A stretch of 64,000 nt of DNA from the NCBI GenBank assembly GCA_904063045.1, contig CAJFCJ010000001.1, positions 2,852,001-2,916,000 on the forward strand. Reading direction: 5' to 3'. The stretch comes from Dimorphilus gyrociliatus. Lineage: Eukaryota > Animalia > Annelida. The position numbers and the translations under genes were made by a program. How positions within the stretch are numbered: position 1 is the stretch's first letter; each line of letters opens with the position of its first letter. The notes under the pieces were generated by a model. The model was not told the DNA's origin. It made no database searches and saw only the letters and a program-made list of their open reading frames with translations. Positions 42,072 through 48,532 of this stretch are shown here, in pieces.

Positions 42072-45000
42072 TCAGCTTAACGTATGTTTAATAAAGGCCA
42101 TTCCGTGTTTTCTCAAATGCTTAGCCAACACATCTTTATCATCAAACTCCTCTTGACATTCTCTGCAAGATAGAGTTTCTTCTTTCTTCACTGACATACA
42201 CTTTTCACTCTCATTACTATCAATTAGACTAGAGATCATTTGTGGAATTTCCTCTTTTGACGTAGATTTTAGATCAATACTATCTCCAATATCATGAACA
42301 ATAAATACATGTCGCTTTAAACCCGCCACTCCAACGAAATTTAAGCCACAATAAGTACATTGAACAACATGATCAATTGTTTGAACAGCATGCTTCCTTA
42401 TATGAATAATAAAATCCTCTGAATTTTTCGTTTCAAATGAGCATCTTGCGCAAATTCTTTTACCTTTTGAAAAAGATAAAAGTCGAACATCATTTGCTGA
42501 TAAACTGGTTGACAAATCTTCTTTGCCATTCTCGATAAAATCCGCCAATTCCTCCTTTGTTAAATTTTTATCATGAAAAGTTAATAAATGTTGGCGAAGT
42601 TTGTCCTTTTTGGCAAATGTTTTAGATTTTCCGCAAATATTACAAATTAATTGAGTTATTTGTTGGCGAACTCTTCCCAAATGTTCAAATGATAAATGTT
42701 CATCCAAATAGTTTCTATTAGAAAATGATGAATTACATAAATGACAAATTGCTGGATAATTTTTATTGTGACATGTAGATTCGTGTTCTCCAAGTTCTCT
42801 CCAACTTAAATATTTTTCGCCACATTCAAAACATATTTTCTTACCGATTTTTTCCATGCTTGCTGTAGCCTGGGAGGAAAATAGCATTGTGTTAAAGACG
42901 CGAAATCCGTGATAATTTATAAGTTACGATTTTTATAAATAACTTTAAATTGCCACTATCGTTCGTTATATTAAATATATATTTTGTTTTATCTTTTTGG
43001 TTAAATACTTACAGGTTTATTGGTCTTTTTCTCCATTGGCTTTACTTTTAAAATCGGTTGATACGGTTGAATATCTTGAGATATTCCATCATGCTTCTCT
43101 TTCATATGAATTTTATAAGCATCATTTGTACGGAAAGCAATTAAGCAGAAATCGCATTGTTCGTGAGTAAACTCTTTTACCTTTGGATAGGTGAAAGCTT
43201 TTTCATCTTTATTTTTAGGACAAGTTGCCACGTGCTCTTTTAAGCATTTCTCATTCTGCTCAACGTAATTTGATCCGCATACTGGGCACATAAAGAGACA
43301 AAGTTGAAAATCATGTGTCTGCTTCAGATGATGACGAAAATCTTCATAGCTAAGAAAACCCTTAGGGCAAATATAGCAGGAATAAAATACAACTAAATTT
43401 TGCTTAGCATGAGTTGCCATATGCATTGTATAGGAATGACGCTGAACAAATAACTTCTTAGGACAGAAGATACAGGAATAAGCTTTAGTAGTAGATTCAA
43501 TATTCATATCTTTATGATCCTTATGGTGATTTGTCATATGCTCTGCAAATCTACTTCCGACAGGAGTTTCACCGTGAACTTTTATTGCAACCGGGCACAA
43601 TGGACATTTCCGCAAAAGGCTGTCATGATTGAAAGATAGATGATCTATATAATGAGAAAAATCGTCAAACAATGATCCACAATCTGTTAAGAGAAAAAAA
43701 AAACAATTTATAAAAACAACTTCAGTTCCAAAATTAGAAAAAACTGTACCTGGAAAATGACAAATAAATTTCATTCTTCTAGAATTGTGATGGCACGTGA
43801 GATAGTAATGTTTTGTTAATATTTCCAAATCTCGAACAATGAGACCGCATTCTGGGCAGGAAGAATATGAAGAGACATTGTCATCAATTTCCTTCTTTTC
43901 CCTTTTTCCCACGTATTGGCAGGTGTTCATATGAGCTATTAGTGCACACTTTGATCCAAACAATTGTTGACAATGGGGACACTAAAATAACAAATGAGCC
44001 ACACGTTACAAAAATGTAATAACAACTTTTAACTTTTAATGTCGTTAACTCCTCTAACAATTATAAGATTATTACCTGACTCCTTGCCTGCTCTTCTGGT
44101 TCACCTCTAAGATGGCTTTTCAAATCATCAACAGTTGCACTACAGTACAGACATTTTCCTCTAATTGATGGTTTATCCGTATTAGAGAAATAAGATATAT
44201 CTAATTTGTTGTCTTGGGAAGAAATACCACTATCTAAATGCCATTTGACTGACATTTGTAAAATTCCAGATTTCCAGTCAGTATGATGGCCCTTTAAATG
44301 AGACAATATTGAACAAACATTATGAACAATTAACATTTTGTCACAACGATGACAGATTAATCCTAATTCGAAAGAATGCTTTTCATGCTGATTTAAAGCT
44401 GATTCGTTGGTGAATCTAAAAGTACACTTTCGACAAGGTTTTGATGCTGATAAGCTACCATCGTTTTCTGGCTTTTCTCCAATTTTTTCCATATAATTAT
44501 GAAATAAAGATGTAAAATGTTCCATGTCTTTTTTTCTACTAGACTTGGGTAAATATAAACTTTCTGGTGCTACTTTACAAGGACTCTTTTTCTCCGAATC
44601 AGTCGATGCTTTCTCTAATCTTGGAGCAAGTTTTGGTTGACCTCCAGCTGCTGTTGTTGGTATTAGTAATAATTGTCTTCTCTAAAAGTTTAAGGAAATA
44701 CGTTAAATCCTGCCAAAAAACATAAATTAAAACAATTTACTGACTTGATTTGGAACATTTGTTGGACCAGGAACTAAAAGGAATTGATTTTGTACGGGAA
44801 CTTGGTTTCCAGGAAGCCTAAGCAGAGACATTCCGCTGGTGGGTAAACGATTGGGCGACTGTCCAGGTTGTTGAACTATTAAATAGGTTCCTTTATTTTG
44901 GTTGTTTAATGAATTAACTACCGAAATATTCTGGGTTTGAGGTAAAATTTGAGATACGCCACCAGATTTGGTTTTTGACTGTTCAACTCTAGCTATTTTT

Positions 45001-45257
45001 AATTTGTCAATCTTTAGTTGTTTATCTGAAGGAATCTCTGACCAATCAACATCTTCACCCTCTTGACCACTCTGATCAAAGTCCGCGGACTCGCTATCAG
45101 CCTTCCTCTTAAGAGATTTGAAAGAATCATTAGACTCATCCTCAAGAATTTCTATCCGATCATCAATAGAAGATTGACTTGAAGAGGATGAAGTTGGAAT
45201 GCTATCCAAATCGCTGCACGAATTATCGGATTCATCTTTTTTCTCATCTTCTTCCAT
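42072..45257 (-). CDS. Multi-C2H2 zinc-finger protein (ZNF532/592/687-like architecture)
   Basis: Acidic N-terminus from ATG 45257, Q/P-rich linker, more than 10 CxxC...HxxxH fingers in ORFs 44061-44525, 43001-43963 and 42072-42887; apparent 5'UTR intron about 45280-45859. Confidence 0.85.
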
Positions 45258-45918
45258 GTTTAAGACCACTCAATCTGTGAAGATTAAAATAGAAGATTCT
45301 TGTTTGAACTCTCGTAATAGATTGATATCAAGTCTATTTGAAATTATAAAATCAGCAGTTAAGCGATAATTCCAAGTTTTAAAAAGTATAACGCTAGACT
45401 TTGTCTAGAATATCGATCAATTCTTAAATTTTTTATAACAATTTTCTATTATAAGATATTAACTATATAAAAGTGTTTAGTTACCATTGGTTACAAGAGA
45501 TAATTAAGTATTCATTTAATGAATTGCATACCAAATCGGATGCTTTACAAATCCTTTTCAGTCTATGTAAACAATTGGTTTGTAGTATATATTGCAATGG
45601 AGATGACACTACCAGTAGTTTATCGATTTCCGTCAATAATAATAAAAGTGAATTTTTTACGGTATCTTAGTATTTCACATTTGTATACATTGATGCTAAC
45701 AGTAATTTTCTCAGAGTCGCATCCACTGGTAGGCCGATGAGAATATTTACTTTCAATTTCTATCGAAAAAATTCTTAAAATCAAATTTATCGATATTTTA
45801 GATAATAGAATATTCTATATTCAATTATTTATGTACAAATTGAATATCTGGTAAAATACCGCTTTTAGTTCCAGCAGAAGCAGCGTAGAACTTCGAGAAA
45901 AAACGTTGTTTTAGGATG

Positions 45919-46075
45919 ATCACGTGATTTCGGTCTTTAGTATCCCAGAATTCTGGGAAACTTTAGCCAATCATCATAGCCAGCGATTCCTGAATAGTCC
46001 CAAAGTTGTTGACGATTGGATGTTTCAGCAGCTCTACGCATGCGCTCTTCCTGAATTTTACTCCATTAGGATTGG
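45919..46075. promoter_or_regulatory. Bidirectional promoter: palindromic E-box ATCACGTGAT (45919-28), three CCAAT boxes (45967, 46015, 46071), NRF1-like ACGCATGCGC (46036-45)
   Basis: Dense motif cluster in a GC-richer island between the minus-strand zinc-finger 5'UTR exon and the plus-strand snoRNA host. Confidence 0.7.
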
Positions 46076-46243
46076 TTTCGACAATTCAAATCTCCAACAT
46101 GGGTGGAAGCCAAAAAGTGTCAGCAGGTGTACAGAATTTAGCGTTTCACCTTCGGAGAAGTCTAATATACAACCTCATATCGTGATGATGAAGCTTATGA
46201 TGGTGAGAATACTCATGTTATATACTTCAGTAAATACTTATAG

Positions 46244-46315
46244 TTAACATGATGAACTTTGTCAGTATAATTTAATGATTTAGTGATTATTAGACTAATC
46301 TTCTCTCTGACTCGC
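46244..46315 (+). ncRNA. SNORD7: Box C/D snoRNA, SNORD7/mgU6-47-like (predicted U6 Am47)
   Basis: C box ATGATGA 46249-55, D' ATGA, C' GTGATTA 46283-89, guide CTAATCTTCTCT 46295-306 perfectly complementary to U6 AGAGAAGAUUAG (nt 43-54, human numbering), D box CTGA 46307-10. The fifth-nucleotide rule gives A47. Confidence 0.88.
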
Positions 46316-46471
46316 AAAGTTTTGATGTTACTTTCACTGACTTTTAATGAAACTCATAGATTTTTTTATTGTTTGCTAGGACTTGCCCAAGGGAACAGGC
46401 TGATCTCTATCATTTTGTTACATATCCTACGGTAAATATTCAATATATGAAACAAACAAATGTGACATTAG

Positions 46472-46585
46472 CAAATATGATGAAAGTGCAGGGGTCCTGA
46501 AAGCAGTACAGATGTGACTGCAAGTTCAGGAATGATTTTGATATTTGCGTGTGGTGAATATCAATTAATTCCTAAGCTGAAAAGC
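46472..46585 (+). ncRNA. SNORD94: Box C/D snoRNA, SNORD94/U94-like (predicted U6 Cm62)
   Basis: C box ATGATGA 46477-83, guide GTGCAGGGGTC 46486-96 pairs U6 G58-C68 with two G-U pairs, D' CTGA 46497-500 (fifth nt = C62), internal hairpins, D box CTGA 46577-80. Confidence 0.82.
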
Positions 46586-48532
46586 AGAATCTGATAAAAC
46601 AGTCCATATAACAACAAATCCTACATTTGCCTTCTCCGCCTGTAATGAGTTTATTTTCAGGGAAAGTGAAATGACAACGACTGATCCGCCATTTTAATAG
46701 AATTCGAAAGAAGTTAATGTGCTCTTTTCGTTCCTTCTATTGAGAAGACTAACTTCTAAGAAGTAAATAATTTGAATATATAGTAAAATAGAATTAACTG
46801 ATACGATTTTCTTTCGTATAAGGAAAGACAGCAGAGCAGGGACAGCAAAATTGAAACACGTGGGAACGATAAAACACCATTATATGGCATAATAGTCCTT
46901 TTGATGGCGCAAAATCCCTAAATACTGATCATAGATATACAATTGCCGTAGAAACTTAATTAGAGGAAAACATGAAGAAGAATAGTGGTGCAAGCAGATT
47001 ACTGAAGATTCTATAAGCTTATACCAAAGTGGAAATGGCGGCAACCAAAATTACTCTAGAATAGAAAAACTAAGTAAAGAAATAGATATTCGGTAAATAA
47101 CAATATCTTACGAATAGACCAGACAATTTTCTGGGCCATCCTTAAAGAAAACAATGAAAAACATGCACCAATAGGTTATGGAGGAGCAATAATTTGAGGA
47201 TGTATGATACTCTTCTGCGCATTTCCCGAATTAAAAAGCTACTATATCAGAGAGTAGCAAACTGTATATCTCTCCTTGAAAAAGCGTTATTGAATGCCCC
47301 TTGTCATAAGGCACACTTAATACTCTACCTTGACGAGCTTACTCCCATTGAGAAGACCTGAAATATTTAAAAAATTTGCAATATGACGTTCTACATTTCA
47401 CGAAAAAATGATTTTGTGGATAAGAGAAATAAGTAACTCTTAGCAAATGTACTACTCAAAGCAAAGGACTGAATTTTGTTAATATAATAGCTTAAAATAA
47501 ATTAAAAATGCACTGATTGTCCTTTAAAGTAGCCCTTAGAAAAAAAGATAACGTATGAAACAGTTCTGCGAACATTGTATGTATATACGTTGACTAATGC
47601 TATTATCATAACTGCTATTCTTTTTATTAAAATAAATGGGGCGATAATTTCCCCAAAATTAACTTGGCATTGAAGTCAATCTAGCAATCATTTCTATTTA
47701 AATCTATTTATTGTATAGACGGAACGTAAAACATTTCGAAGTAGAAAACTAGAAAGTCACAGGAAGCAAACCGGGTGTGAAATCTAGTCTACATGAACTC
47801 TCAATTGACCTTCAATATAATAATATATAAAGGAAAAAATCAGGTCATGTACATGTCTTCAATGTCTTTTCAAAACAAGAAATACAGTATAATAGACCAG
47901 ATTCTAAAAAATGTGAAATTTGGTTCTATAAGAAAATCTATCAGTGTGTATTCGTGTAAAATAAAAACTTTGAACCGCTATATAGTATTAGGCCTAGGTG
48001 TAAATATATATTTATTTATTGGTAAATTAAATTGCACTCTGGCATATCAATGGGATACATTTGTTTTAATTTAAGTGCAAAATGTGTAGGAGTAATCTAT
48101 AGTACAAGTTTCATTAGCAAATTAGATAAAAAAAACCATATATCTTTTTAAACGCAATTTTAATATAATAATCCGATTCTATATTATCTTTCTCTTACTA
48201 ATAACTAAACAAATACGTTTAAAGATAAAAAGAATATTATGAACAGCAGCATTTTTCATTATTTTATCATTAAACTAATACAGTATACTTTATACATTTA
48301 AAAATTGATTACAATTTAAAAAAGAGAACAACATCTTGCATTCCTGCCTCCTTGCCATTTCATCCCCCCCCCCTTCCTCCCCCTTCTCCTTTTCACTTTT
48401 TTTTGTATTGTTTTGTGTTGAAAAGATGCTATTTCAGAAGAAACACAATAATTGTTAACAGTTAAAAGTTGTTATTACAAACTTTTCCAAGGTTAGAAAA
48501 CAGGCGCAGACGTGCATAGTGCTTAGAGTGGC

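Follow-up and report, generated by a model that had tools for sequence, protein, structure and literature searches.

Two putative U6 guide small nucleolar RNAs in consecutive introns of a small non-coding gene of the annelid Dimorphilus gyrociliatus

The window analyzed here is a stretch of 64,000 nucleotides (nt) from the annelid Dimorphilus gyrociliatus (assembly GCA_904063045.1, contig CAJFCJ010000001.1, positions 2,852,001 to 2,916,000 of the forward strand), in which we have studied a small spliced gene on the plus strand whose first two introns each carry a candidate box C/D small nucleolar RNA (snoRNA) complementary to U6 small nuclear RNA. The structure of this host gene follows from three public sequencing runs (X1, X2 and X3) mapped onto positions 45700-47900 of the window. 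X1 consists of unspliced genome, while X2 and X3 contain spliced contigs and are thus RNA whatever their label, which reads 'DNA?' for X3 and '?' for X2. The organism label of X2 also differs, yet its sequence is 100% identical over 2.2 kb and it probably represents the same species under an older name; as no differences to the genome are found, the comparison carries no conservation signal. Three GT..AG introns are defined by identical joints in the contigs of X2 and X3, and one X3 contig of 1227 nt joins segments 45975-46201, 46379-46430, 46660-46762 and 46823-47667. Exon 1 (45975-46202, the approximate 5' end being the start of X3 contig 12) precedes intron 1 (46203-46379, 177 nt, GTGAGA..TAG; joint 46201/46379 with the cut at +1), which carries snoRNA 1. 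Exon 2 (46380-46431, 52 nt) is followed by intron 2 (46432-46660, 229 nt, GTAAAT..CAG; joint 46430/46660, cut likewise at +1), carrying snoRNA 2, and exon 3 (46661-46762, 102 nt) by an empty intron 3 of 60 nt (46763-46822, GT..AG, joint 46762/46823). Exon 4 (46823-47669, around 847 nt) contains an AATAAA at 47631-47636, and the contigs end at 47667 in X3 and 47669 in X2, so that the spliced RNA amounts to 1229 nt (∼1.23 kb) and terminates 31 nt past this signal. In depth of assembly it is comparable to, or higher than, the neighbouring genes. The spliced gene proposed in a preliminary description, made from the sequence alone, is therefore real, as the three junctions recur together with a shared 3' end in two RNA runs and the support asked of the host junctions is provided by spliced contigs. 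The proposed lengths of 229 and 60 nt for introns 2 and 3 were right, although intron 1 measures 177 and not 150 nt: its donor had been placed at a GTAAAT at 46230, whereas the contigs use the GTGAGA at 46203.

Pairing to U6 was evaluated using a reference retrieved from outside the window, within which Rfam detects no U6 gene. A scan of a prokaryote genome collection with a 41-nt U6 core returned 14 loci, all of them eukaryotic contamination in contigs of metagenome-assembled genomes (MAGs), and a U6 pattern scan of viral contigs returned nothing. Full-length U6 genes in the MAG contigs were confirmed by Rfam with E values of ∼1e-23 to 1e-31, one of them lying beside a metazoan signal recognition particle (SRP) RNA and another beside U2 and 5S. 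Six U6 sequences, extracted from four of the 14 loci and from two others, are identical over positions 33-84, and one of these six was used as reference, with human numbering.

The candidate snoRNA 1 (46244-46315, plus strand, ends approximate) is delimited by its boxes and its U6 pairing. It has a perfect C box AUGAUGA (46249-46255) and a D box CUGA (46307-46310), directly before which lies a 12-nt guide, CUAAUCUUCUCU (46295-46306); GUGAUUA at 46283-46289 may be its C' box. The guide pairs with U6 43-54 by 12/12 Watson-Crick pairs, the fifth nucleotide before the D box facing A47, and the perfect match with a predicted Am47 that had been proposed for this intron is thus recovered on the retrieved U6 genes. 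In addition, the segment GACUAAUCUUCUCUCUGA, comprising guide and D box, shows 18/18 identity with the Rfam snoU6-47 consensus (positions 110-127). The guide is also touched in permissive scans by the snoZ30 and snoZ30a models (snoZ30, RF00288: 14.1 bits, gathering 50). An alternative layout suggested by an alignment to snoMe28S-Am982, with GUGAUUA as C box, D' at 46307, C' (UGAUGU) at 46325 and D at 46338, was rejected, because a second guide would have only 8 nt and because the curated U6-47 RNAs have their guide at the 3' end.

The candidate snoRNA 2 (46471-46598, plus strand, with more than one possible 3' end) is defined by boxes, pairing and fold. Its perfect C box AUGAUGA (46477-46483) lies 3 nt upstream of an 11-nt guide, GUGCAGGGGUC (46486-46496), which runs directly into a D' box CUGA (46497-46500). 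Guide and U6 58-68 form 11 base pairs (bp), of which 9 are Watson-Crick and 2 are G-U, and C62 lies opposite the fifth guide nucleotide counted from D', in agreement with the 11-nt match and predicted Cm62 of the preliminary description. In respect to the 3' end, the preferred D box is CUGA at 46591-46594, CUGA at 46577-46580 and UUGA at 46538-46541 being alternatives. Hairpins are predicted at 46502-46521 and 46528-46573, and the RNA folds better than shuffled sequences (z −2.5). Three Rfam models close the molecule by pairing GCAAAU (46471-46476) with AUUUGC (46543-46548), beyond UUGA, which corresponds to a 78-nt RNA; this 6-bp terminal stem requires the use of the variant D box UUGA at 46538. 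A match to snoR118 (E 0.04 in a 135-nt search) was discarded, as this plant family guides 25S Cm1280 (PMC2685112) and the match comprises boxes plus chance. Further downstream, AUUUGCGUGU (46543-46552, plus strand) constitutes a second U6 complement, a 10-nt Watson-Crick run to U6 76-85, equalled by 14/2000 shuffles and by 10/1278 window segments (∼0.7%). It falls mostly inside a predicted 11-bp stem of snoRNA 2, and no canonical box stands in register with it; it may provide an additional, accessory contact with the 3' strand of the U6 internal stem-loop, or belong to the structure of snoRNA 2 itself, for example as one half of an alternative terminal stem with GCAAAU.

The arrangement of the two candidates within their introns is closely comparable. 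The C boxes begin 46 nt (snoRNA 1) and 45 nt (snoRNA 2) past the 5' splice sites. On the other side, the distance from the end of the D box to the 3' splice site is 69 nt in snoRNA 1, as previously stated, and in snoRNA 2 either 66 nt (CUGA 46591) or 80 nt (CUGA 46577), so that the earlier figure of 80 nt holds only for the latter box. When CUGA 46591 is considered, the 52-nt difference in intron length equals the difference in snoRNA length, and the resulting equal flanks around both snoRNAs favour the long form of snoRNA 2. Equal flanks also fit the position dependence of intronic box C/D processing reportedly described by Hirose and Steitz in 2001. The median intron of D. gyrociliatus is 66 bp (PMC7854359); the 60-nt intron 3 is thus ordinary, and the two carrying introns are around three times the norm. 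An origin of these two introns by tandem duplication was considered and rejected, their similarity not exceeding that of shuffles.

Could both complementarities be coincidental matches in AT-rich introns, from which no snoRNA is made? The RNA contigs of X2 and X3 give no direct sign of the small RNAs, neither candidate reaches an Rfam gathering score and the candidate folds are weak, all of which would suit this explanation. Indeed, among all 127,960 positions of the window, a pairing of 11 bp with 9 or more Watson-Crick pairs is attained by ∼1.5e-3 and one of 12 Watson-Crick pairs by ∼8e-5, and a single weak U6 match adjoining CTGA is expected by chance ∼0.5 times per window. Against coincidence, the guides of snoRNAs 1 and 2 rank first and second in U6 pairing among the 315 CTGA sites on both strands of the window. 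The next-best, at 2682 (2662-2685, facing U6 88-98), forms 11 bp with 7 Watson-Crick and 4 G-U pairs, has no upstream C box and was dismissed as chance; all remaining sites reach at most 8. The two guides lie 190 nt apart on one strand, each with a perfect C box at the proper distance, and the joint occurrence of two canonical C boxes, two CUGA boxes and the best two U6 matches in 64 kb is far above background. Moreover, they fall in adjacent introns of one verified transcript, with equal flanks, one of them shows 18/18 identity to a curated consensus, and their predicted targets are known methylation sites: human U6 is 2'-O-methylated at eight positions, A47, A53, G54, C60, C62, C63, A70 and C77 (PMC5855946, PMC7960923), and both guides aim at positions of this set. 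Two matches in adjacent introns, with canonical C boxes and directed at two of the eight human sites, lead us to conclude that, judged from sequence, the pair of predicted U6 guides is not a product of chance, and we regard a wholly coincidental origin as extremely improbable. The claim that two consecutive introns hold one box C/D candidate each, with boxes and guides as described, is thereby upheld.

Both candidates have the general attributes of box C/D RNAs, namely a RUGAUGA C box near the 5' end, a CUGA D box near the 3' end and an antisense element of at least 10 bp that ends at the D or D' box (offset 0) and places the target at the fifth position. In human, methylation of A47 and C62 has been assigned to SNORD7 and SNORD94 (PMC5855946, PMC7960923). 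Like snoRNA 1, the mgU6-47/SNORD7/Z30 RNAs use a D-box guide to the ACAGAGA-proximal region of U6 with A47 at the fifth position, and the Rfam consensus of mgU6-47 is identical to snoRNA 1 over GACUAAUCUUCUCU plus CUGA. Members of this family are known in Drosophila, where mgU6-47 is nucleolar and occurs alongside mgU6-68 (PMC3884663), in S. pombe (PMC5855946), in Neurospora as CD11 (PMC2780460) and in Arabidopsis as U27-2 (PMC2685112), and have also been described in human and Xenopus. Human SNORD7 is intronic in the non-coding LINC02001 (PMC6466398), and snoRNA 1 likewise resides in a non-coding host. It differs in its length of ∼72 nt, against the 132 positions of the snoU6-47 model, in that the similarity is confined to the guide, in having no terminal stem and in sharing its host with a second U6 guide.

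As for snoRNA 2, it has the trait of SNORD94, a 5' guide that follows the C box and sets U6 C62 opposite the fifth position before D'. Its UGAUGAUUGGCGCAGGGGUACGGA aligns with the beginning of the SNORD94 consensus, UGAUGAAAGUGCAGGGGUCCUGA, the two having in common the C box, a short spacer, GxGCAGGGGU (core GCAGGGGU) and D', together with the C62 register and a U-G59 wobble. Both are unusually long box C/D RNAs (∼125 nt for the long form of snoRNA 2, 137 positions for the model), although D' is a perfect CUGA in snoRNA 2 and degenerate in the SNORD94 consensus. The human RNA U94/SNORD94 is assigned to U6 Cm62 (PMC7960923) and hosted by PTCD3, and the zebrafish homologue lies in rrm2 (PMC6023535), in contrast to the non-coding host of snoRNA 2; we found no report of the SNORD94 family outside vertebrates in a literature search that was not exhaustive. 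A different possibility is that only snoRNA 1 works on U6, snoRNA 2 being an orphan, differently targeted or decaying RNA that does not direct methylation of C62. Its duplex indeed contains two wobbles and belongs to a class reached by ∼1.5e-3 of random positions, its C' box is unclear and its D box ambiguous, and the SNORD94 model assigns it only 10.4 bits. However, a perfect AUGAUGA at 3 nt from the guide and a perfect CUGA in the exact C62 register, a layout and a U-G59 wobble that agree with the SNORD94 consensus, an intron of matching geometry next to that of another U6 guide, and the additional U6 complement of 10 nt that this RNA contains (p ∼0.007) make this possibility unlikely. From the shared features, snoRNAs 1 and 2 would be functional counterparts, probably orthologues, of mgU6-47/SNORD7 and U94/SNORD94, respectively, rather than members of the Rfam families as presently modelled.

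The coding capacity of the host RNA is limited. The longest open reading frame (ORF) starting with ATG in the 1229-nt spliced RNA has 68 amino acids, others having 53 and 28. A Pfam search of the 68- and 53-residue ORFs gave no match even at E 10, and in a collection of 5.8 billion protein clusters the 68-residue ORF has no homologue and is itself absent. A methionine-rich ORF of 22 amino acids had been put forward, which does not exist in the actual mRNA as it depended on the misread intron 1; in the spliced RNA the methionine cluster reads MMKLMMDLPKGTG followed by a stop, or else forms the tail of the 68-residue ORF if transcription starts near 45975. It may be asked if the host is more than a carrier, acting through a lineage-specific micropeptide (from the 68-, 53- or 28-residue ORF) or as a long non-coding RNA with a role of its own. 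Besides the presence of these ORFs, the 847-nt length of exon 4 and an RNA depth similar to or above that of neighbouring genes could be read in this way. Yet the ORFs have random-looking sequences, no Pfam match and no homologue, one is missing from the protein collection, and the upstream ones terminate 130 nt or more ahead of the last junction, as is usual for non-coding hosts; a function of this kind thus appears very unlikely. The claim of a non-coding host is sustained, there being no credible ORF, and the absence of ORF homology fits an unannotated, presumably non-coding transcript. A likeness to GAS5-type substrates of nonsense-mediated decay was an inference only; such decay is plausible because the 68-residue ORF stops 130 nt upstream of the last junction.

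Non-coding hosts with several snoRNAs, one per intron, are well established, examples being UHG and GAS5 in vertebrates and the Uhg genes of Drosophila. Like these, the present gene gives a spliced, polyadenylated RNA with short ORFs, the upstream ones ending well before the last junction, and one box C/D snoRNA per intron; it differs from the UHG/GAS5 type in that it carries two snoRNAs only, both directed to U6 and not to rRNA, and in that no start of the 5' terminal oligopyrimidine (5'TOP) type is seen. Two U6 guides in one host also occur in human CHD8, which contains SNORD8 and SNORD9, both for U6 A53 (PMC6466398, PMC6023535). CHD8 encodes a protein and its two guides are paralogues directed at a single site, whereas the present host is non-coding and its guides are unrelated and aim at two sites. 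Otherwise, human U6 guides have separate hosts (SNORD7 in LINC02001, SNORD94 in PTCD3, SNORD67 in CKAP5; PMC6466398, PMC6023535), and SNORD7 on chr17 and SNORD94 on chr2 indeed lie in different host loci, as stated in the preliminary description. Its further statement that a U6 cassette of this sort appears undescribed in an invertebrate is in keeping with the unusual U6-only packaging and goes too far in that the guides are long known and widely conserved and that both non-coding hosts and the CHD8 pair of U6 guides have precedents. Similarly, 'dedicated' is overstated as a label for a host of two snoRNAs. In the part of the literature covered, no paper on annelid snoRNAs or on a U6-only host was found. 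The guides being familiar, it is only their packaging in one gene that is unusual, a modest curiosity.

The interpretation that we consider probable is that a small non-coding host releases two U6 guides, for A47 and C62, through ordinary splicing-dependent processing. The transcript, its junctions, the boxes and a complementarity beyond chance are established, while the formation of stable RNAs, snoRNP assembly and both methylations are inferred. An RNA polymerase II transcript of ∼1.23 kb begins near 45975, in a promoter region common with a divergent zinc-finger gene, is spliced at three GT..AG introns and is polyadenylated near 47668, apparently without giving a protein product; its job would be to deliver the two box C/D snoRNAs, each from an intron of its own. 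Once spliced out and debranched, the introns would be trimmed by exonucleases to snoRNP cores composed of Snu13, Nop56, Nop58 and fibrillarin. The D-box guide of snoRNA 1 would then pair with U6 43-54, fibrillarin methylating the ribose of A47, just past the ACAGAGA box, and the D'-box guide of snoRNA 2 would pair with U6 58-68, in the 5' strand of the internal stem-loop, resulting in methylation of C62. A number of observations weigh against this interpretation. At gathering thresholds Rfam finds nothing in the whole window, and the Rfam search that the preliminary description had proposed as a check turned out negative, with 19.7 bits for snoRNA 1 against snoU6-47 (RF01221, permissive scan, gathering 54) and 10.4 bits for snoRNA 2 against SNORD94 (RF00613, gathering 60). 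The U6 reference stems from other eukaryotes and not from this species, and the analysis covered the locus of a single animal species. In respect to the RNAs themselves, snoRNA 1 has no terminal stem and folds no better than shuffles, and in snoRNA 2 a C' box is not clearly recognizable and the D box has three candidates. Finally, intron 1 is covered by no RNA contig of X2 or X3, and the coverage of intron 2, by an unspliced X2 contig spanning 46403-46689, looks like unspliced precursor and not mature snoRNA. As to the Rfam scores, plausible metagenomic U6-47 snoRNAs found by the 18-nt guide string also score nothing, which indicates that the models are narrow and their thresholds uninformative here.

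A more far-reaching version, which we put forward tentatively and hold to be rather doubtful, would make the U94/SNORD94 guide at least as old as the bilaterian ancestor and snoRNA 2 a two-handed clamp, gripping U6 58-68, in the 5' strand of the internal stem-loop, by the D' guide and 76-85, in its 3' strand and beyond, by the second element, co-transcribed with the A47 guide from a U6-only host so that modification of the U6 core is controlled as a unit. At a minimum, the analysis adds annotation to a compact annelid genome whose genome paper has no mention of snoRNAs (PMC7854359), and it suggests a greater age for the C62 guide, known from vertebrates, than the curated family implies. In human U6, Cm62 and Cm63 have been linked to the installation of m2G72 (PMC13109388); a U6-only host would offer one promoter through which two methylations of the U6 core could be lowered together in a small animal, and could help to test the role of these marks. 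The understanding of U6 modification as such is unchanged by these findings.

Upstream of the host lies the divergent gene on the minus strand, whose ORFs at 42072-45269 show C2H2-type C..C..H..H repeats, as recognized by eye and not by a domain scan. Its first intron (45760-45859, minus strand, joint 45759/45860) has CT..AC ends on the forward strand. X2 coverage runs without gaps from host exon 1 into the first exon of this gene, down to 45860, and the two genes, arranged head to head, thus have a promoter region in common. The RNA contigs of the two genes overlap in X3 by only ∼26 nt (45975-46000), which suggests that their start sites cross each other. A 5'TOP start at 46045, where a pyrimidine tract follows a GCATGCGC motif, finds no support, as RNA contigs begin at 45975 or earlier, upstream of this tract; the contig starts of X2 and X3 thus give no indication of a 5'TOP-type start of the host transcript.

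The database scans also returned some observations on other organisms. The U6-47 guide string occurs in 23 metagenome loci, among which around four sequence groups look like genuine snoRNAs, and no C62 guide is present in the flanks of these 23 loci, a result of little weight as the organisms are probably not animals. The bacterial MAG contigs with eukaryotic U6 genes (L001, L005, L008, L012 and L013) are attributed to Desulfobacteraceae, Ekhidna, Fermentibacteraceae and others; the contaminated contigs belong to species-representative genomes and include tandem U6 arrays, a 5S-U6-U2 cluster, a metazoan SRP RNA and tRNA clusters. Among the metagenome loci, L018 (640-700) and L026 contain a very compact putative U6-47 snoRNA of ∼62 nt, in which 17 nt separate AUGAUGA from a first CUGA and GACUAAUCUUCUCU with a second CUGA follows after a short spacer; it is invisible to all Rfam models at gathering thresholds. 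In an AT-rich metagenomic eukaryote (L020, 1540-1585, and L029), GUGAUGU stands directly before the U6-47 guide and CUGA, and the exon just upstream resembles the HSP70 motif DVLLLDVTPLSLG; here an intron of hsp70 seems to hold a U6-47 guide that acts at the D' position.

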